A DNA stretch of 64,000 bases, from the NCBI GenBank assembly GCA_000708835.1, contig DF237295.1:1-64000 (forward strand), given 5' to 3'. Positions 9,430 to 51,366 of the stretch are shown here, piece by piece (position 1 is the stretch's first letter; the number at the start of each line of letters is the position of its first letter). This DNA comes from Klebsormidium nitens. Its lineage: Eukaryota; Plantae; Klebsormidiophyceae. The notes beneath the pieces are model-generated. The model searched no databases. It was not told the DNA's origin and was given only the letters and a program-made list of their open reading frames with translations. The position numbers and the translations under genes were made by a program.

Positions 9430-12400
9430 CTAGCTAGACCCAGTAAATCTCATTACGTCCTTGGTTAGCATCATTGCAGGCCGCTCTAGCAAGGAGGAAT
9501 ACTCCGAGAGCAAATAGTGAACATACTTCAACCAGTTCCCGTTCCCTATCAGCTTAGCATACTTCTCCAACACCCGCTGGTGTACCAACCGCATCTCTTC
9601 GTCGTGCGCCACTGCGTAGCGAAGCTTTTCTGGCAAGTCGGACGCGTCCTCTGCTATTGGTATATAGTCCTTGTACGGGGTCAGGAAGTCGTAGAAGTAC
9701 TCCGTGTATGGCGAGTTGGCCTTGAAAAACACAGCTCCGCAGGCCAAGACATGCGCATACCGGCTGCTCCATGCATTTCCGTCGATATCTATCAGGTATT
9801 TGTAAGACGTGAACTCCCCAAAAGAGAACTGCTTTGTATCGGTGGGCAGCCCAGCCTCCTTCATGGCCTGGAAGGTCTGTTCTGAGCATTGCCCTGGCGC
9901 GCAGGGTAGAAACTTCGCGTCCAAAATATCCGAGTTCGCCCGAGTGTGGTTCACGAGATGAGTGCGTGGGTACCGCCAGAAGTTCTCCTTGGTGTACTCA
10001 CCACCTGAAGCGAGGGCGAATTGAAGATTCATATAACCAGTTTACGAAAGAAGACCTGTCCCTGCAGTTTCGTTGCTTTACATGCGTAAGCGTGCTGGCT
10101 CAGACAAGAACGAAAGATTTGACACCCGTTCCTGATCCAACTTAGCAAAAATTGCCTCCCAAACTTCGTCACGAGTCTACCTTCAACTTCAAATATTGTA
10201 TTCGTTTGTATTCCAACAACCGAAGTTTACGACCACCCCCAGTACGATCTGCTGAAATCCAAAGCAAGGATTGCAATACTGCAAGGATACCGGAAACTAA
10301 AAATACCTTTTACAACGCTGCACCCAAAATTCAAAGGCCATTACACAGCACCGTCTCAAGCAATGAGATTACAACTCAACAAGAGCATCTCCGGATCTCC
10401 ACCTTGGGCAGATCCTGGCTTATACGGATTGAAACACGATATCGAACACAAATTGTCTCCATGACGACTGCAAATCCTTTGGTACCTAGCACGGGTGTCC
10501 ATCAGGCCCATGCAGTGAATAGAGTTCCTAAGCCTGTGGGTGTGAGATGCGAGCCAGCTCCATCGATCGAGAGGTCAGGCCTTGCAAACCAACAGCACGT
10601 AAACTGGCATACGTTGGTTGTTACTGCCTCGCCGGTGTTCACGGTCTCAGTGCCACTGCCAAAGCCCCTTGAGCAAAGCCGTCCTTTGGCGGTACAGATA
10701 CAGAACCCAGGACTCAGAACCCCATCGGTAACTAGGACAGAAACAAAGAATCGAAGTGTTGCCGACACACCTGTTGGAGAGCCCCTCCAGATCGCCTTAG
10801 CGGTGCGCCCGTCCCACCTCTGCGCATCCTCTAGTTCCGACGGCAGCAGCTGCTTGATCTTGCCATAGTACTCGGTCGTCGGGAGTGGGATCTCAGCAAA
10901 GTCGGATGTGGTGGTGTAAACAAATAGCGGTGCCTTGTCCATGTGAAAGGGCGCCCGAAAAAGCTTGGGGCGATCCTGGATGCTTATGACCATGTCGAGA
11001 TAGTCCGGGAGCCCATGCGCTGCCTCGAGGGCCTCAAACAGGTTGTGCCAGTGGTGGACACGTGGCATGTAGTAAATGTTGGCCTGCAACGCCGCTTGCA
11101 TCAGCGTCGGGGGCCAGATGAGGGAGCCGTTGATGACGCGGACTCGGAAGGAGGAGTGGGAGTGGCCGCGGTCCAGCTGTTGACACCGGGCGCGAGAGTC
11201 AGGCTTGGAAAAGTGCGGTAAAATCATGGCGGTGTTCAGTGGGCTGTCGCTCACCTTATGGCTTTCTAGAATGGCATCAATCATCTTGATGTGACCTACC
11301 TGTTTCCAAGAGAAGCAGAGTTGCCCCAAAGACCTAACTTCTCAAAAAAAGTGCCTCTCATGAGAGCAGTCATGTGAGCAGTCAGGAGAAGTGGATGTGA
11401 TGGTCGTCAAAGGGCGTTCAGCTGATTTTAAAACCCAGGAATCCACAGTGGCAGTTGGTGTCAGGAACAGAAGAATCAACGTTCACAATAGAGAAAGCTT
11501 TGAATTGCTGCCAGCTATGGTGAAGCTTCTAATCGAGCGGCTGAGGGAATTACGGTAGCAAGAAACCTCCTGACTTGGCAATACTTATGCAGCTTTATTC
11601 AAACGGATATTGAATGCCCATTCGTGGCACTAGCGTGCCCCACTTTGGTGGGCCTGCTTTGCAAAAGCGTGCAATAGGACTCAGCCAATTCATCGGCGAG
11701 AATCCAGAATCTTGCAGGAGCGAAGTGCAGTTGCCGGTTCGTTGTTGGACAGAGAGTTCAGCCGACCTTGGCATATGCTGAAAGGACATGCCATTGATGC
11801 ACAGTCTGTGCTCTCTTAGCGTTCAAGAGCACGTCTCAAAGCCACACGGACTTTACGGTTGATGCCGGGAAGGAAAGAATTCAAACAGCATGTATTTGCA
11901 AAATCCGCACAATCTTTACGCCCGCTTCAACAGAATCTGCTTTCGAAAGAATGCACAACTTCTCCAAGACCTCCCTCATTGCTACGGATGTCGGCAGTAG
12001 AATCTTGCAACAGATGAATTCCTGCGAGACTGGTGTCTTCGTTGAAGCAGATTGCCGCAGAAAGAATGGCGAAAACCTCTGGGAGGCATTTTCATCCATA
12101 GCTGAGAACCAATCTTTCAAAGTTTGAGACTTGATTGACAATCCTTGCGGGCCATTTTGAAAGAGAGGCCAGTCCACGTCGGCTCACCATGTAATCCCAA
12201 AGGTTATCAACCATCTTGGTGCTTATCGACGCGCTTTCAAAATCGTACTTGTCCCATGGAGTCAGCCAGCGCGTTGCCGTGCTCTTCAATAGGTCTTCGT
12301 ACTTGCTCGGCAAGGCCGGTATCAGCGCCTTGAGCCCCTCAGGAATGTCACATGGCGGACAAACCTCGCTCCCAGAGCTTGTGTACAAAGTTGCAATGCT

Positions 12401-23000: not shown

Positions 23001-26000
23001 ATGCAGAGAAACCGTCTTGGCTCGTGGGCCTCCAAAATCCCTGCAACCGCTTGCTGTCATTACGGGCTGGCTTCTGGGCAAATATGATTGCAAAACTGTT
23101 GTAAGGGCCGCAGCAGATGAAGGGGTTTGCTGGAAAAACTCCTTGATCCACTACGAAAGCAACGATAGGCTACAAGCCTTTGCACTGTAATTTTCCGTCC
23201 TAACACCGTCCGGTCCTACCACCCACCTTAAGTCGATCTGAGCTGATGCCATCGCAGTCCGCGTGAATCCAGAAGCCGCACTCGCTGTTGTCACATCCCA
23301 CCTGCACCGCACGCACAGCCTTAACGACGCAGAGCGTTGAACGAGCGGGTTCAACATCTGCAAGAACGACGACTCCTGAACAGCAAAGCAACATCAGGCA
23401 CCTTTACAAGCCCTGAGTTTCGAGGTTCCAAGAGCGCTTAGACAAGAAGGCTCGAAAAAATTTTTGATCAGAAAGGGGTGACAATTGGCCAGCTTTTAGT
23501 TTCCCGGGTTGAACATATCCGCCCGCGGATGTGTGTGACCTCAGTACTCAAATCAGACTCTCAAGGCATCTGGGAAGAGTGGCAACCCTTCATCCCTTGA
23601 GGAAAAAACCCTCCCCACCTTGAATAACCAGATGACCAAGACCGAGGAAGTTTAGAAGGTTACGAACGCTTTCCGCTTACCCAGCCGTCCGTCTGGTTCG
23701 GCAGCCATATCTGCTTGCATACCCAGCAGTACTGCTTGTTCTCGAAGAGCTGCACACAAGAAAGAGACGGCTCAGCCCGGATTCTCAAATTCCGAACTTT
23801 CCACCAGGGAGCATCTACAAATGTACTGGCCATTATGTCATCGCTCTCAATTTGATTGCCAGTGCCGTCGCATGACCATGTAAAAGCCCCTTTTTTGACT
23901 ACGACTGTGATGCAATGAAATATAAAGGACCAAAAAGATGCGGGTGAACACGTCCGGAGGGCAGTTACTCTAACGAGCAAACGGCTCAACTCATTAGCTG
24001 CTGCTCGATGTTCCTGGTACAGAAGCCATCCGCAACATTACAAGTTTCAAATATCCCGCCAGCCCAGCTCAGCCCTGATCACACAATATGTGACCTCTCC
24101 AAAGCAACGACAAGAAAAAGCGCATGTGTTCCTTACCTTGTAGCACGCCTCACAGACTTTCTCCAGGTCAACCGCATGCCCTTCGTCGAGGCCCTCTTTT
24201 CGCTTCCCCTTTCTCTTCACCAGACCTCCACAACTGATGCACTCCTTACTGCCCCCTGCCGCCGATGTCTCAGCACTAGTAGCACCAATCGCTAGGGCTG
24301 TGAGTTGGGCGGAGTTTGGTTCTGTGGTTGAGGAGGAACTAGAGCGAAGTTCAGGAGGCACCGGGTCGAGGTGGCCGTCGAGGCGCGAGGTGGAAAGCAT
24401 CGCCGCCGTAACGGCGGCGCGGAAGTCTTTGGCGCGCTTCTTCAGATCCTGCCCGCAGAACCTGCGAGGAGAGACATACGAGTGGTATTTTAGCAGACGG
24501 CTAAGGGAAGAGAAGGGAAAGTTACAGTAGGAGGTAAGGGAGTCCAAGGGGGGGGCCAACAGAAGCGTTCTTCCTTCCGTTGCAACGATCCAAGCAACCA
24601 TCACGGCAATGAACCTTCTGAAAGTCCTTGCAAAAGTCTCCTAGAGTCTGCTTCTTCTCAAGTCGGCCATAGATTTCATGACCGGAATTGAGGACGAGAC
24701 TCACCATGTTGCAAAGTCGAGGAAGGGAAATATGTTGCCTCGTTTTACCCACGAGTAATCCTGCAAACGACAGCCGCAAAGCCAGACTCGTGAGGTTGCG
24801 GCCTGGAAGCCCCCAGATCTATCGAGCAACAAATTCTCCAGAGTCCAGTCCTCTGTCTGAAGTCAGCAGCGAAGGTTTTGTCCGGCAAACAAGCACCCAG
24901 GACAGTGCAATTATCGACCCCAGCAAAGGGGCACCGACGCTGGAGCAATCAACCGGGGTTCCAATTTGGCTATCGGCAAGAGAATGTCTTTCTTAGCAAG
25001 GAGCAGATGGGTCAGCATGCCCCTCGCTAAGAAAGACACCCTCTTGCTGATAGCAAAAACTCTCACATGCTTTACCCCAGCACGTATAACCGCACTCCTT
25101 CACCTGGGGCCTAGCATTTGAGAATAACCCTTCTAGTTCTTCATGGTATGGCTTTAAGCTTCAACCACTCGCAATTTCAAGTCTGGGCCTTCTTCGAAAG
25201 CATGATGGGCACACCTCTCTTGAACCCTGGCTCATTAGCACGACCCACATCCTCCATTCGTAAGAAATGGACTCTCCAAACGTGACCTTCGAGTATTGGT
25301 AATCTTTAGAACTCAGGTAGATTAAAGCAAAGTAAAGTGAAAGTGTTTGACCTAAGTGGGGCACGCTAGAGCCACGAATGGAGTAGCTACCCGAAAGGGA
25401 GTGGAGCATAAGAATAATAATAATACACGAAAAGCACGCTACCGAGTGGGTGAGACGAAGGTCGTAAGCCCTTTGGTCGAGAAGAGACAATGACAAGACT
25501 CAAAAAAGAAGCCCCGTATAACGAAGTATTATATTGCTTACCTTATCCCACTTTTTGGACGACGACGGCCCAAAGTACTCCACACACAGCGCGTCAGGTA
25601 CAAACGAGCGCCGCACGGCCTCGGGCACATCCGCCATCTCCACCACCTTGGCCGGCCAAAACGGGTCATACCGCGTGCCCGTACGCGCCCATACTAGTTC
25701 CTCTGCCTGGAACTTTTCCAGGGGGAACGCGGCGCCCTCAGGCATGTGCCTCCGGCTCACAGCATTGCTTGGCGGGGCGACACCTGGCGCTTCCGGAAGC
25801 TTCCCCCCCACAGCATTGCTTTCTAGGGGCGGTTTTGATGCTGCACTTTTCCTTCTGGGCGTTTCTGTGATTGGTGCCATGTGAGGCGCGTCTACAAATG
25901 GTGCCAAAGAAGGGGAGCTTGGCGAGGGGCTGCGGTCTCCGACACTTCCTGGATCCGGGGTGGTGATCCTCTCTGCTGAGGGGACCCCTACCCCTACCCC

Positions 26001-27033
26001 TAACCCTGCTCCTAACCCCAGGTTAGGGTTTGGCAACTCAGCGCCTCTCAAACTGTCCTGCTGCAGGGGGCAGCTCGACAGTTCAAACGAGTCGCGGAGA
26101 AAGGATGACAAGTGGCCGCTTGGCCCCAGGGGTGCATCGCTGAGGTCAGCGCTAGTGGCAGCGGGAAGGAGAACAGGCTGCTCTTTGCAGTCCTCAGCGG
26201 AACACTCCAGCCCGCACTCTGAAGCAGATCTGAGGACGTCGGGGCAAATTCCACCTGATCGGGCATACGAATTGGTGGAAATATTGGTGACAACTCTCAA
26301 ATTCTCGGTGCACTTCATAAGTTGCCCTTGCAAGGAAGTGACGACTGCGTCTCAATAAAGCAACCCACCAAGGAAGTTAAGAAGGCATGACAGCTGCAAT
26401 CATTTCATTGACAAGTTTACCACTCATTTTCAAGTCGTACAAAGCAGTTTACCATCATGGAGAACCGACACAGCGCCTGAAACAGCCGTCAAGAGTGTAT
26501 CAAAATTTACCTGCCCCCCTCAAAGCTCGTTTCACTGGGCTTGTCGCCCCATCTACCTCCATCTTCTCCAGGCCGCCCGCTCCACTTGATGCAAAGGACG
26601 AGTTTGCCGGCAGCTGAAACTGCTGACATTGCGCCGTCCCCAGTCCCTGGGCGTCACAACCGGCCGAAGCAGGCGCAAGCAAGCAAGCAGCATCCGTTTT
26701 GCCCTTCTGCTTCTCTGGGTTAACACAGCCCGCCTCTTTCTTTAAAACCACTCTAGCTTTGGGCTTCTGGCCTTGTTTGGACATATCCACTGCTTTCCGC
26801 TTTCTGGCGCGCTCCTCTCGAGTTTCTCCATCCTGAGGATCTCTTTTACCCAAGACTCTCTTGGCCATCTTCGTTGGCAGAAGAGGAATGTCGTTCTCCC
26901 TTGCTTGGGGTCGTCTCTTTGCACCGTCACCTATTTTGATGGGCTGCACCCTCTTGGCTAGGAGAACTAGTGGCACATCTTCGTCAACCTCACAGCCCGC
27001 CAGCTGACGCTTTCGTCCCTTTCTCTGGATCAT
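14025..27033 (-). CDS. ATX3: Trithorax-group histone H3K4 methyltransferase, ATX3/ATX4/ATX5 (SDG14/16/29) clade: PWWP, PHD, SAND-like, PHD, ePHD, SET, post-SET; 21 exons, ~1229 aa
   Basis: Exons 27033-26511, 26344-25542, 24760-24705, 24461-24137, 23749-23681, 23301-23227, 22809-22754, 22350-22270, 21530-21392, 21105-20997, 20377-20278, 19750-19536, 19045-18897, 18114-17951, 17461-17257, 16629-16513, 16049-15984, 15669-15493, 14918-14844, 14482-14385, 14112-14025 (3690 nt, in frame). Motifs: [18 protein letters not shown] and [13 protein letters not shown] (PWWP), CWVCKQ..WIHADCD (PHD), [86 protein letters not shown]. The exon 2 acceptor could alternatively be ~18 nt further in, in the same frame. 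Confidence 0.95.
22697..22743. repeat. (AAAAC)n-type microsatellite in ATX intron 7
   Basis: AAAAACCAAAAAAACAAAAAAACAAAACAAAACAAACAAAACAAAC; reads as U-rich (GTTTT)n on the transcribed strand just after the donor. Confidence 0.85.
24969..25054 (-). other. 37-bp stem-loop in ATX intron 2 (pre-miRNA-like or foldback element)
   Basis: Arms 24969-25005 and 25018-25054, 12-nt loop; 32 Watson-Crick pairs. On the minus (pre-mRNA) strand four of the five non-WC positions become G:U pairs. Confidence 0.75.
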
Positions 27034-45146: not shown

Positions 45147-45932
45147 CATGCACATCTACGAGCGGATATATTTGTCGCTCAAATTGATCCCTTTGAATGT
45201 TTACTGACGCATTACCTATATAGTTACTAAATCGACTTTCTTATATCAAGATATATTCGATGTGCAATTCATCGTCAGCAGGCAAATGTAGGCCTCGCAA
45301 AGAGCTTGCATGGTGCCCGTAATGAATATCGACATCCGAGCTATAGTGTTTGAACTTAGCTGTTTGGACTAGAGACAAAATCGTACCTGGGTACTCTGCA
45401 TCGCATCCGACACTCGAAAGGTTCCCATGGACACAGGTTCTAGCCCGCGCCCAATTAAATTAGCCATGGCATGCGCACCGGCAATGCTACGTACTAAATT
45501 CTGCGAGTTGGCTGCCCCCATGTATATTTCTGATTGAACTGCACCGGCCTGACGTACCATTTATTGCATGCGGGCCAACTGGCCTATCGAGTCTGCTGCG
45601 GTACTATTGGTGCAGGGCAAATCTTTAATCGTACAAGCAGCACGTCGCAATGCATGCACCCTGCAGAATATCCCTAATCTCAAGATCGCAGATTTCAAGC
45701 TAGGCAACAATCTTGCTCTATGTAATCCGTGTCAACAGAAGAAGATGTGCTCAAGTTGTTGCAACTAAGCGGTCTGACCGACATGAGTCATAAATATGTG
45801 CCCCAATGTGTCTTTGCCCTACTTACAGCCCAAACTCTCTATCTACATGCCAACCACTGACTGTCCAAGCAAAGCATGCGGCAAGCTAGCTGGCCAAAGA
45901 AACCTCCTAACCAAACAAAACCAACCGGTCAT

Positions 45933-48900
45933 CTACAGACCTGCCGGAATGTCTACACTGTCCCCACGCGATAGTGCCAACCGCTTCTGCTCTGTCGCCG
46001 TGATTTGCTCCGGCGGACCCCTCTTTGATATCGACCGTGCCACCGAAGAGCCCTTCTTCAACCATGACGAGATCGTGAAGGCGGGGCTCGGGGCGTCCGC
46101 CTCAAAGAACACATACCAGATGAGGAAGATATAGCTTATGTAGCCAGGGATGGAGCCAATCAGCGTGAAGATGATTGCCACCAGGTTCTTCTCCCGCAGC
46201 GTGACCTCGTCATAGCTTATGCTGGCCGCCAGGACAACAGCGCCGAAATTGGCAGTCGCGGCCTGCGCGGCCGGGATGTTGTGGAGTGACGCAATGCCGG
46301 CGGTCACGTTGGGAAGAGGGGTCGTGGTAAGAGCGCCAAAGATGGGGTACTTCACAATCTGTGAAGAGAGCAAGCGTCAAGGCGGTGAATTATCCGGAAT
46401 CCTCGGTATTTGCTGCGGCATCAACTATTCTTGACAGGGTAATTGTTAAGGATAAAGAAATCTATGTTACTTTCGTGACCAATGAGCCGCAAACTTGAAA
46501 ACCCGAAGCAGAAATCCTGCATAATGGTGTCCTGTCTACACATTCTTGAGAGTTCCCAGCTTCGATCTTCTCAAGGCTCCAAGTGGATCCAATTGCGCAG
46601 TGACATCAAAGTCCCGAAACCTTGTTTCAGAAAGCTTCGCCTGGCAGATGCTATTCAATCCCTAGCGCAAGTTCCGAGGAAACAACTGACTGCATCTTGA
46701 GCCCTCATTCCGATAAGCCCTAACGAAAAGGATGAGACCTCAAAGTTTAGAAAGTCTGCTGGTACAAGTGAATCTCACTTGGAATTACAGAAGCACTGCG
46801 GCACAACCCTGATCGTCAATGAAAGTATTCCGCAGGGTCGCAATTCTGAGTTGCGGAGACATCAACGCCCCGTAGATATTGCCAGGTGACAGAGGCTAAG
46901 ACCCTCCCCATCTTTCGCTGGATTTTCCGGTTTCCAGGATCCCCACAGCTGAAGCCGTAAAAGTCTCTGCCAACAAAGTTCATTCGCAGATGTCGCACGA
47001 ACACGAGTTGGCAATACATCAAGTTGGAAGGAAGAACCGGCTTACACTGTGGCCATCTGCAAAGATCCGGTTGGTCTTCTGCATCTGGATCGTGGTGCGT
47101 GCAAACGGCTGGAGGAACGTCGCGCCCTCCTCAAACTTCTCCACGCTGTCGGCCTCCTCGAAGATCTCCTTGAAGTCGCGCAGAAAGCCGTTGTTCGCAA
47201 TCAGCTTGGGACCGCCGAAGTCGGTGAAGTACACGTTCATCCCCACTGCATATACGTGCAAAGCACAGCTATTCACAGACTACGGTATACACGTTCTTCT
47301 CAGCTGCTTTCGAGATTCTTAAACCTTGTGCAAGGAGCGTTGCTCAAATTGTCCTAACATTCAGCGTTTCTGACGGGAAGGACGACGCAAACAAACGGCA
47401 TCCGAGTAGCTACTAGACAACGAAACATGGATGATTTGTTTGAATGGTAGAGTCCAGCACAGACTTTAGGCTGACAAGGAAACCACAGCCGTTGTGTGCT
47501 CTATCCCCGAACAAACAGCAGTAGCCACTAGCCTTACAACACAGTACAAGCGGGAGGGGTTTCGAAACTTCTGAATGCCAGCCGGTAAAGCAAAGCCTGC
47601 GAAAAGGAAGGCTGCAGGCCATCCTGCTAAACCGCAAGCGTGTTTAGGCATGAGAGGCAAGTGCGTGAGGGGCAAATCGACGCCGGCTTTACAGCTGGAT
47701 ATCGGGCCTAACCATGTGCGCTGGGAAGAGGACAAATGAAAGAGGAAAGAGGAAAGGCGCCAGTCGCTCAAAGCGATGAACCTCTGCTGCAGCGCACGGA
47801 GGCTGTCCTCGGGTACCTGACGGGAACGAGGCCGAAAGTGGCACCAGTCTGTCGCCGGAAAGAAACCTTATCAAGAGCGCTGGGAAATAGAGAAGCCGGA
47901 CCACCGAAGAAAGAGCTCGAATCGCTCACGGCCAATGAAGCTCTGCTGTAGCGCACTGAGGCCGCTCTGGTAAGTCGACCTTGGGTACATGACATAAACC
48001 TGCCCCTCCCAGGGAATGTCGGTGGGGCCCTGCGGGTTCAGCTTGAAGGACACGCACTGCGTCGCCCGCGGCCCTTTGAGCTGCCGGTTCATAATCTGGG
48101 AAGGGAAGCGGGAATCAGGCTTAAATTGTAGATACAAGCAACAATTCAGGTTCTTTTGATATTTGAACACCCGGTGCTTTCAGCGCTTTCCACAGTGCGC
48201 AAACAGTCCCAGACACAGAATGACAAACAGACTGAGTACATTAAGATAGCAAGCGAAGGAATCGGTGTCAGGTTTGTTACTGATAGTAAGGTCGAGGCCT
48301 TGTCCGGATGCGCTTGGTAGAGCTTTATAAGAAGTAATCAGGCAGAATCATGACAAAAATACACGGGCTGCTTGCTCACGGTCACTTTTTGTTCTGTCAA
48401 ACCTGCAAGTAGTAGGCCCCTCAGTAAGGGGCACTCACCTGTATACTCAACAGTTTCGATTGTTTATCATTTCAACTCCTCAAAGAATACACAACGCCAA
48501 TGGGACCGGCGCTGCCTGATGAAGAAGGCTTCTGGAATACACATCGTAAAGGATACGACCACGAAAGGGCTTAATGCAGAAGTCCACTGCCCAACCCTGC
48601 TTCTCACCCCTGAAATAACTTACCTGCACCGTGACAACCTCAGGCACACAGAATGTATCAGTGCGCGCACTCGCCCCCGCATTGTTGCTCTGCAGCACGA
48701 GCTCCGGGCTCCCAACATCGTCCCCACAGCCTACGTAGATGTTGCCGGTCAGATTGTACGTATCGGGGTTACTGCTGCATATGTAGATGTATGGCAAGAA
48801 CGGCAGTTTCGACTGGATGGTCTCCTCCACTATGTGATTCTTCACGAGGTTCACGACCTGCGAAGGAGAAAGAGCCAGGACAGGTTGGTGATTCCTGCTG

Positions 48901-50372
48901 TGGTGTTGGCGTGGCAAATCAGAAGTTTCAATGTGGAAACCCCTACATGGGAGGATGGTCATTCGGACGGCGCCCGTGCTGTGATCGACTTGACAAGACC
49001 TCTGCCCTCCAGCAGTCTTATGAGTCAATGAGCATAATCTGATCGACATATTCCTGCGGAGAAGTCAAACCGAGCAGAGGCCACTTAGTCTTGATTGAGT
49101 GAGGGCAGGAAATCTGATCGGTGTCCACACTTCATGACTCAAACTCTTGAGTTACTTAGTGGGATGATTTGCTGACAGCATTTCCCTCTGTTTGTGCACC
49201 CTTCAACCTGCACAACACTGATGCAATTCTTGAAACAACATTGCCGGCGCTTGTACGATCTGGTGCAGTGGCAACTGCTTCTGAAAAACCTGAAAAGGGA
49301 GGGTTTAAGCACTCCATCTGGATGACATCATCTGTGCACATAACCCTCATTTGGGAAAACCACCTGTTGCTCATCAAGCTGTTCTTGGATAAGGTAGAGT
49401 AAAAACTTTTTTTGGGACGATTAGGCCTATCAATACCACACCAGCCGCACCGTCAACCCCTTTTTGTCTACCTTTGTCTTGGTGAACTGGTTTGAACATC
49501 CTTCTCTGCCAACTCTCCGCCAACTCTTACAGGTTTCATTGATGTACGGCTCACAATGAAGCCCTCACAACAATCCTCTGACCTAATATGCCATGACTTC
49601 ATCAACATGTTCTTCAATTTGTAGAACCATCACCTGGCATGGGACGCACAAAAGTGTACATGACAACTGGGTGGGAACGGCAGACTGATGCTGGCTTAAG
49701 GGTGGTAGTGACAAACTCTACGGTTTGAAAGAAAGCAAGTTGACTGCTCCACCATGGCTGGTGCTTCAAAGTTTCTGAACATGATCTTGCAGCATTCAAA
49801 TATGAGAACTCTATACTAGAATGTTGCCTCCTGTCACTCTCAAGGAAGTGCTTGCAGAAAGTCCATGATGCTTGTTTCTGAAGCTGGCGTGCAAACAAGC
49901 TGGATAAGAGATCCGGATAGATTCGGTTTGCATTGGAAAATTTTGTTCGCAATGAGGACTTGAACCGGAAGGAAACAACCATCTCATCATCCAAAGAATT
50001 AGGGACAGGCTAACGGCATTGCGGAAGATGTCTGAAAAAGAAGTTCAATGACAGCGTAAAGATGACAAAGATAACCATTGATGCTAACACGGGGTTTGGA
50101 ACCGATGCACGTTGAAATGTCATAGCAATCCTGGCCCTTAATGAAATTCATGAAAGTTTACTCAAAGCCAGAAAGGCAAGTATGTAGAACACAGATATCA
50201 GAACTGCTGAAAGAAACTTAGGCAAAGCGAAAGAAGTTTGACTCACCGAAATGACAGAGAGGACCGTCACAATAAGAGCACCAACAACCAGGGTACCGAA
50301 GAGGCAAAACCCAAACTTCCTGTAAGTTTTTTGAACCTTAAATGGGTTTGGAAACTCGCCAGCTGAAGACAT
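45933..50372 (-). CDS. Uncharacterised two-transmembrane protein with a ~250-aa ectodomain, putative DEG/ENaC-superfamily-like channel subunit, 5 exons, ~383 aa
   Basis: Exons 50372-50247, 48857-48624, 48095-47930, 47245-47046, 46358-45933 (1152 nt; phases 0,0,1,0; all GT-AG). TM1 FGFCLFGTLVVGALIVTVLSVISVVNLV; TM2 LVAIIFTLIGSIPGYISYIFLIWYVFF; four ectodomain Cys; N-glycosylation sequons NLT and NVT. The gene model is well supported; the family assignment is inference. Confidence 0.7.
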
Positions 50373-50711
50373 CTTTTCCCCGTTTTGTTGTATATGTGAC
50401 AGAGGTACCAACAGAGCTGATGTAAATACCCTAATGGAACCCAGGCAACTGAACGCTTCCAAGCCCTGCCAACGAGCCCCGCAGAACTTTGTCGGGCTGG
50501 GAGAATCCTGGCACTACCAAATGCCTTTACATTCCCCAATTACGTTACGAAGTTCCTTCGAACAGCTTGCACCAAGTCCTGAAGTCGTGTGCAAGCGAGC
50601 ACCTTTGCAGTTGACTTCAAACAACGCTTACAATAGGTAGCTAGAAGTTGATAACAAAATAAAGGGCAGCAGAGGCAAGGCATCAGGTAAGATTAAATGC
50701 AGACTGAGAAA

Positions 50712-51366
50712 NNNNNNNNNNNNNNNNNNNNNNNNNNNNNNNNNNNNNNNNNNNNNNNNNNNNNNNNNNNNNNNNNNNNNNNNNNNNNNNNNNNNNNNNN
50801 NNNNNNNNNNNNNNNNNNNNNNNNNNNNNNNNNNNNNNNNNNNNNNNNNNNNNNNNNNNNNNNNNNNNNNNNNNNNNNNNNNNNNNNNNNNNNNNNNNNN
50901 NNNNNNNNNNNNNNNNNNNNNNNNNNNNNNNNNNNNNNNNNNNNNNNNNNNNNNNNNNNNNNNNNNNNNNNNNNNNNNNNNNNNNNNNNNNNNNNNNNNN
51001 NNNNNNNNNNNNNNNNNNNNNNNNNNNNNNNNNNNNNNNNNNNNNNNNNNNNNNNNNNNNNNNNNNNNNNNNNNNNNNNNNNNNNNNNNNNNNNNNNNNN
51101 NNNNNNNNNNNNNNNNNNNNNNNNNNNNNNNNNNNNNNNNNNNNNNNNNNNNNNNNNNNNNNNNNNNNNNNNNNNNNNNNNNNNNNNNNNNNNNNNNNNN
51201 NNNNNNNNNNNNNNNNNNNNNNNNNNNNNNNNNNNNNNNNNNNNNNNNNNNNNNNNNNNNNNNNNNNNNNNNNNNNNNNNNNNNNNNNNNNNNNNNNNNN
51301 NNNNNNNNNNNNNNNNNNNNNNNNNNNNNNNNNNNNNNNNNNNNNNNNNNNNNNNNNNNNNNNNNN
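50712..51366. other. Assembly gap (655 N)
   Basis: Run of N characters. Confidence 1.

Follow-up and report, generated by a model that had tools for sequence, protein, structure and literature searches.

A two-pass membrane protein of the alga Klebsormidium nitens with a nearly invariant second transmembrane helix, outside described families and possibly similar in fold to PAC/TMEM206

The alga Klebsormidium nitens encodes, on contig DF237295.1 of assembly GCA_000708835.1, a two-pass membrane protein whose gene is the subject of this study. The stretch of DNA that was analyzed (positions 1 to 64,000 of the forward strand; 64,000 nucleotides (nt), hereafter the window) holds this gene on the minus strand as five exons running from 50372 to 45933, the spliced translation of which gives a protein of 383 amino acids (aa). 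The gene, KFL_003460070, is real, expressed, and spliced, is under purifying selection, and is already annotated, though without a family name. An earlier examination of the bare DNA (the sequence-only reading) had taken its product for a minimal, ASIC-like member of the DEG/ENaC ion channels. As far as sequence comparison reaches, the protein shows no detectable kinship to ASIC/ENaC and, by the tests run, is a member of no described family. Its second transmembrane (TM) helix is nearly frozen among orthologues, and we tentatively discuss below whether this might reflect an oligomer with a pore like that of the proton-activated chloride channel PAC (TMEM206).

Gene structure and transcripts

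The spliced 383-aa product is letter-for-letter identical to GAQ87337.1 / A0A1Y1IF46 ("hypothetical protein KFL_003460070", Klebsormidium nitens), and the five-exon model put forward by the sequence-only reading thereby matches the deposited protein. All introns are of the GT-AG type, with good acceptor tracts and phases 0, 0, 1, and 0. RNA sequencing had been named as the check on splicing, and the transcript contigs of two public runs (X19 and X20) indeed carry exactly the four predicted exon joints. Both runs are recorded only as 'RNA?' or '?', and the presence of transcripts was deduced from the spliced contigs; word depth in X19 and X20 lies at 50-108 in the exons and at 0-12 in the introns. 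The comparison covered 45700-50600 (4,901 letters), and the lengths of the untranslated regions (UTRs) are hence lower bounds: at least 228 nt for the 5' UTR (50373-50600; transcript contigs over 50245-50600 at a depth of 50-68) and at least 233 nt for the 3' UTR (45700-45932; unbroken X19 and X20 contigs over 45700-46358 at a depth of 63-108).

The coding part of exon 1 (50247-50372, like all following features on the minus strand) starts with the ATG at 50372, covers aa 1-42 with the putatively cytosolic N-tail and most of TM1, and is followed by a GTGAGT donor after 50247; its joint to exon 2, which connects 50247 to 48857, is present in transcript contigs of both X19 and X20. Exon 2 (48624-48857; aa 43-120) is flanked by a CAG acceptor and a GTAAGT donor, and its joints are found in transcripts. 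It encodes the end of TM1, the post-TM1 motif (48765-48806) with Cys69 (48777-48779), the sequon N77-L-T (48747-48755), the segment G-C86-G-D-D (48717-48731), and Cys112 (48648-48650). Exon 3 (47930-48095) contributes aa 121-175 plus one base and includes Cys134 (48054-48056) within T-Q-C-V-S-F, while exon 4 (47046-47245; aa 176-242) encodes the probably helical middle of the outer domain, with a conserved E-K-F-E-E-G-A-T-F-L at 47112-47141. The coding part of exon 5 (45933-46358, stop included; aa 243-383) finally holds the pre-TM2 strand (46188-46226), TM2 (46104-46187), and a predicted cytosolic tail of 56 aa (45936-46103).

The start codon at 50372 is the first in-frame ATG downstream of an in-frame stop (50514-50516), on account of which a longer N-terminus was rejected. 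The 5' UTR contains a single upstream ATG, at 50532 and out of frame. An assembly gap of 655 N (50712-51366) begins 340 nt upstream of the start codon, and the promoter region is incomplete.

A search restricted to 'RNA-Seq' libraries returned two metatranscriptomes only, with small shares. Exon 5 transcripts that are 92-96% alike over 45990-46245 occur in X25 and X26 (metatranscriptome runs, one of them recorded as a soil metagenome), from which it follows that Klebsormidium-type relatives express the gene in environmental samples. Among the differences listed for these contigs, 13 of 18 fall on third codon positions (phase counted from the exon 5 start at 46358). A literature search found the gene identifiers in none of the relevant papers.

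Topology and conserved residues

By hydropathy, the two TM helices extend over roughly aa 20-46 (TM1) and aa 300-327 (TM2). Four Lys or Arg residues precede TM1, the segment after TM2 is rich in them, and the outer loop holds two sequons (NLT at 77, NVT at 259) together with four conserved Cys. Both termini are accordingly predicted to be cytosolic, with two TM helices enclosing an extracytosolic domain of about 250 aa, i. e., a hairpin membrane protein. The sequence-only reading had described just this layout (short N-tail, TM1, an ectodomain of about 250 aa with NLT and NVT, TM2, and a cytosolic tail), which is borne out by hydropathy and charges, and its order of Cys residues likewise holds: they lie at 23 (inside TM1), 69, 86, 112, and 134, the outer four being invariant and probably forming two disulfides. 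The possibility that TM1 is a cleavable signal peptide was considered and rejected, as the hydrophobic stretch extends over 27 residues and is preceded by four basic residues.

An alignment of six full-length or rebuilt sequences contains 59 invariant positions. Kept in all six are N9, P10, V13, and K15 in the N-tail; P61, L63, P64, Y67, and C69 after TM1; G85, C86, D88, C112, and C134 in the outer domain; S288, I289, Y291, D292, and E298 before TM2 (S-I-x-Y-D); and I305, G310, P313, Y315, W323, and F327 in TM2. An N-glycosylation sequon is present in most family members. The outer domain appears to be rich in beta structure, with a probably helical middle at aa 160-220, and its strand S-I-S-Y-D-E-V-T-L is separated from TM2 by R-E-K only. 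Within TM2, T307, G310/S311, G314, and S317/Y318 form a stripe of small and polar residues, to which an invariant Gly and Pro are added. The N-tail motif N-P-[FLM]-x-V-x-K recurs in six of six sequences (N-P-[FLM]-x-V at aa 9-13, 50334-50348, in the six-protein alignment) and reads N-P-F in three of them, which would match the binding consensus of endocytic EH-domain proteins.

Relatives and constraint on TM2

Full coding sequences were rebuilt from the DNA of relatives, namely L007 (a Logan contig), L004/L005 (JGI metagenome contigs), L001, and L009. Identity to the K. nitens protein amounts to 89% for L007, 73% for L004/L005, and 34% for both L001 and L009; a K. subtile transcript protein (P0011) is 89% identical. 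The five-exon plan is common to all rebuilt relatives, and in the distant L001 the introns occupy the same alignment columns and have the same phases, including the phase-1 intron after exon 3. The exon 4 boundary of L009 is not settled: at L009:8591-8620, the frames of G-L-N-A-Y and F-S-V-Y-G-P-G-G lie one base apart, which may be due to a later acceptor (ttttcag) or an indel in the contig. L006 is a spliced metagenome transcript contig of the L004-type orthologue; a frame change near its 3' end (L006:1126-1130) is probably an assembly error, as the genomic L004 is open.

The detectable family consists of Klebsormidium species and two divergent types, A (L001) and B (L009), on metagenome contigs; types A and B are 43% identical to each other and 34% to the K. 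nitens protein. A phmmer search with exon 5 against 1.8 billion representative proteins gave four matches, i. e., the K. subtile orthologue, two fragments of 34-36% identity (P0002, which is exon 5 of L001, and P0003, of the L002/L009 type), and a repeat artefact (P0004). Beyond Klebsormidium-type pieces, nothing was added when 5.8 billion clustered proteins were searched with P0001, with P0005 (the K. nitens protein itself), or with the family profile, and a pattern scan of JGI metagenome contigs yielded one additional locus, a transcript contig. A single JGI sample (3300060285) holds type A (L001:5762-10375), type B (L009:4995-10468), and the Klebsormidium type (L005:974-4074) side by side, the two divergent types on long contigs; these may be paralogues of one alga or stem from different algae.

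For the whole protein, the ratio of nonsynonymous to synonymous substitution rates (Ka/Ks) is 0.118 against L007 and 0.119 against L004. The most constrained segment is TM2 (aa 300-327; 46104-46187), as judged from both regional identities and Ka/Ks: two orthologues with overall identities of 89% and 73% have a TM2 that is 100% and 97% identical (Ka/Ks 0 and 0.017), and TM1 in the same two orthologues is 89% and 74% identical (Ka/Ks 0.06 and 0.29). Such constraint on TM2 is what would be expected of an inner helix packed against copies of itself.

Comparison with DEG/ENaC and P2X channels

The proposal that the protein is a true, if reduced, member of the DEG/ENaC family (ASC, PF00858) and homologous to ASICs is in our view very improbable. 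The resemblance that gave rise to it is genuine at the level of layout, since ASIC/ENaC/degenerin subunits share the two-TM topology, a large outer domain, and a strand leading into TM2; differences are found in the number of outer Cys (four here versus about 14) and in the outer domain, which is here about 100-150 aa shorter. The sequence-only reading had itself stated that the lack of a profile match to ASC or P2X would refute it, and by this standard membership in DEG/ENaC is largely refuted. In Pfam-A scans with hmmscan at E-values (E) up to 10, using the five exons, the whole protein, and nine family rows, there was no match to ASC, P2X, TMEM206, ERGIC_N, or COPIIcoated_ERV, with the limit that the HMMER filters drop most matches above an E of about 0.1. 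What these scans returned was sub-threshold noise on the TM helices (DUF4064, FtsX, DUF2545, and DUF3185). Among PDB chains, ASIC and ENaC included, no sequence match was obtained, and a profile search gave chance matches only (a nanobody and a NaV channel, E above 1). ASC clusters were likewise missing from the displayed rows of the 40 nearest ESM Atlas neighbors, by features as well as by structure. For P2X (PF00864), the missing Pfam match is accompanied by a further difference, i. e., four outer Cys as compared to ten conserved ones in P2X.

The motif matches fare little better. The strings quoted in their favor (LPFLPYIYICSSNP, ATQCVSF, ASISYDEVTLREK, and LIGSIPGY) are all found in the protein, yet two of the three ASIC motif matches that were tested are at chance level: the one to the TM2 pattern (3 of 8 letters; chance 0.33-0.61) and the one to the CxxF pattern (2 of 7 letters; chance 0.93). 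The match to the post-TM1 pattern comprises 4 of 8 letters, with a chance of 0.016 in a 40-aa window (uncorrected for the several patterns tried). Of these four letters, types A and B retain just P61 and C69, and they have Arg or Lys in place of N72. Further hallmarks are absent, as had been recognized from the outset. N-terminal His-Gly is the gating motif of DEG/ENaC, and no His occurs in aa 1-19; TM2 reads G-S-I-P-G-Y-I-S-Y and thus lacks the GAS filter or any (G/S)-x-S triplet, as do types A and B; and there are only four outer Cys (69, 86, 112, and 134) in place of a Cys-rich thumb/finger with its many conserved disulfides. A survey with hidden Markov models based on PF00858 moreover found no DEG/ENaC in land plants (PMC12806904). 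On the other side of the balance remain the shared topology, the partial post-TM1 match, and a structural hint of PAC likeness (see below), which points indirectly to the ASIC core (12 strands in palm and beta-ball). Of the sequence-only reading, what holds up is the broader notion of a small protein with two TM helices and a beta-rich outer domain.

Predicted fold and a possible PAC-like pore

The one source of fold evidence is an ESM Atlas model of this exact sequence, with a predicted local distance difference test (pLDDT) of 0.61 and a predicted template-modeling score (pTM) of 0.55. The first-listed named structural neighbor of this model is TMEM206/PAC, with template-modeling scores (TM-scores) of 0.45/0.47 over 248 aligned residues for the whole protein and 0.55/0.40 (0.55 by query) over 194 aligned residues for the ectodomain (aa 48-298), a predicted model being compared with a predicted model in both cases. 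Four clusters with PF07970 or PF13850 (COPII-coated ERV, Erv41/46) reach 0.42-0.52 for the whole protein and 0.49-0.51 for the ectodomain (by query), unnamed Mucoromycota clusters 0.51 and 0.50-0.58 (both by query), and a PF27811 Y80K_N cluster 0.43 and 0.49, respectively. By feature similarity, Mucoromycota transmembrane clusters rank first (0.96; 216 of 256 features), a value that shuffled proteins reach about once in 100, followed by Y80K_N (0.89) and TMEM206 (0.85; 171 shared features). These Atlas neighbors carry neither an alignment nor an E-value and are to be taken as leads only. The Mucoromycota 'transmembrane protein' and Y80K_N clusters, which have the top feature similarity and a length of 277-483 aa, were not reached by phmmer or profile searches.

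PAC/TMEM206 (PACC1, PF15122), whose two TM helices enclose inner and outer beta domains with a helix-turn-helix insertion, resembles the K. nitens protein in several respects: a size of about 350-383 aa, termini on the cytosolic side of two TM helices, an outer domain that is rich in beta structure, measures 200-250 aa, and probably has a helical insertion, and a TM2 that is far more constrained than TM1 and contains a conserved Gly (G310 here, although these positions cannot be equated, there being no alignment to PAC). In PAC, TM2 is the pore-lining inner helix that crosses at a conserved Gly, whereas TM1 tolerates substitution (PMC7904269). PAC and ASIC/ENaC are also reported to have in common a beta core of 12 strands with a TM helix on either side as well as trimeric assembly, despite the absence of sequence homology (PMC7904269). 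Homologues of PAC have been described in vertebrates and a hemichordate and in no other organisms (PMC6663466).

It is because TM2 is nearly frozen and bears its stripe of small and polar residues that we would favor an oligomer built on this helix. The protein might assemble as a homo-oligomer with TM2 at the core and TM1 as a tolerant outer helix, and the beta-rich outer domain with its helical insertion would sit on top; the result could be a PAC/TMEM206-like and hence architecturally ASIC-like pore that is gated from the outer domain. We infer the steps from a constrained TM2 to an oligomer and from there to a pore; the TM2-based oligomer, and in its most specific form the PAC-like pore under control of the outer domain, is the reading we favor, though with low confidence. 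In K. nitens, TM2 has no internal charge, and acidic residues lie at its inner mouth (E328 and D330; 46095-46103 for E328-D330). At the cytosolic end of TM2, two positions ahead of the invariant Trp, types A and B (L001 and L009) have a Lys in place of the Leu321 (46122-46124) of K. nitens and its close orthologues. If there is a pore, types A and B and the Klebsormidium type would thus have opposite charge at the inner mouth.

Several observations weigh against such a pore. AlphaFold2 gave a pLDDT of 40.2 on the single sequence and 39.5 with a 9-row alignment, and its models are unusable, since at a pLDDT of about 40 any fold matches would be meaningless. The TM-scores named above are near or below the 0.5 line, with predicted models on both sides, and clusters of the Erv41/46 type and of fungi score like PAC. 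By sequence and profile methods (TMEM206 profile included), no connection to PAC, ASIC, P2X, or another family could be made. The conserved Lys near the cytosolic end of TM2 that serves as anion filter in PAC (PMC7904269) has no counterpart in the K. nitens protein. Between the membrane and the first strand, TM1 furthermore seems to stay helical over about 10 residues, as opposed to the short TM1-beta1 linker of PAC, and a frozen TM2 would fit any tight helix packing and not a pore alone.

Alternative interpretations

The Erv41/46-type neighbors of the Atlas model raise the question of whether the protein might be a very divergent relative or a structural analogue of the Erv41/Erv46 (ERGIC2/ERGIC3; PF13850 and PF07970) cargo receptors. 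The latter cross the membrane twice, have a twisted beta-sandwich on the lumenal side, cycle between endoplasmic reticulum and Golgi, bind cargo in a pH-dependent manner, and probably form a three-subunit complex (PMC7001479). Their four clusters among the nearest structural neighbors, with scores about equal to that of PAC, are in line with a common layout, in which a short N-tail and the C-terminus face the cytosol and two TM helices frame a lumenal domain of beta structure with structural disulfides (PMC7001479), and the ERV family is universal in eukaryotes, so that a lineage-specific offshoot is plausible a priori. One structural disulfide is invariant in the Erv41/46 lumenal domain, and the present protein has its four invariant Cys. 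The N-tail spacing F-x4-K-[VT]-x3-Y-[KR]-K may also resemble the start of the ERGIC_N domain. Other features do not fit. The protein, its exons, and its relatives match neither ERGIC_N nor COPIIcoated_ERV at E up to 10, and no ERV cluster occurs in the rows shown for the 40 nearest neighbors by features. Erv41/46 proteins have cytosolic tails that are short and carry, at the C-terminus, either a hydrophobic COPII or a dilysine COPI signal (PMC7001479), whereas the C-tail of 56 aa is not short here and ends in P-A-G-L (K-R-N and S-K-V in types A and B), with neither a dilysine nor a shared hydrophobic terminal signal. An Erv46-type CXXC region is missing, and a cargo receptor would not obviously call for so extreme a constraint on TM2. 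Altogether, we consider kinship or analogy to Erv41/46 unlikely. A literature search retrieved no paper that joins TMEM206 to Erv41 or deals with structural homologues of TMEM206 by Foldseek or AlphaFold.

Under another scenario, the membrane protein would be specific to its lineage, with an individual fold and a role other than that of a channel, for example, as a receptor at the surface or in endomembranes, as a sensor of wall or adhesion, or as a scaffold that is internalized via its N-P-F-like tail motif, in which case the likeness to PAC and ERV would amount to a generic beta-sandwich between two helices. Searches of 1.8 billion representatives and 5.8 billion clustered proteins detected the family in Klebsormidium species and a handful of metagenome contigs only, which would agree with this, as would structural scores that are all borderline and spread over unrelated annotations, the failure of AlphaFold2 to give a fold, and the conserved cytosolic N-P-[FLM] motif, which together with the long C-tail suggests contacts in trafficking or signaling. 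Conversely, the feature similarity of 0.96 to a mostly Mucoromycota cluster, rare as it is among shuffled proteins, suggests that the family is not isolated, and TM2 is constrained far more strongly than a mere anchor would call for. We judge a separate fold with such a role to be somewhat unlikely.

Broader implications

Returning to the PAC-like pore, the common core of PAC and ASIC has been called a case of structural convergence (PMC7904269), and a protein with this core in a streptophyte alga would, if real, bear on the choice between convergence and deep common ancestry. It would also represent a new channel class for plant biology, in a terrestrial alga that tolerates desiccation and swings in pH. 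A wider proposal, which we deem improbable, would place the Klebsormidium protein and both divergent algal types in a structural superfamily spread across eukaryotes, with trimeric two-TM proteins built on a beta core; it would take in PAC/TMEM206, ASIC/ENaC, uncharacterized clusters from fungi, ciliates, and haptophytes, and perhaps Erv41/46. The algal proteins would be its minimal members and act as ion channels, and the architecture would predate the split between plants and animals instead of having been invented in animals or having arisen by convergence. Should the protein instead be Erv41/46-like or have its own fold, it would be an ordinary lineage-specific membrane protein, and what the present work offers would then be a verified gene model together with the relatives listed.

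Other genes in the window

Two further genes recognized in the window are unrelated to the two-TM gene, and no functional cluster is apparent. A GT90 glycosyltransferase is represented by exons at 9433-11329 on the minus strand, where open reading frames match Pfam Glyco_transf_90 (E 3.5e-25 and 4.7e-07), and one or more exons of a PWWP-domain protein are found at 25503-26333, also on the minus strand (Pfam PWWP, E 9e-07).

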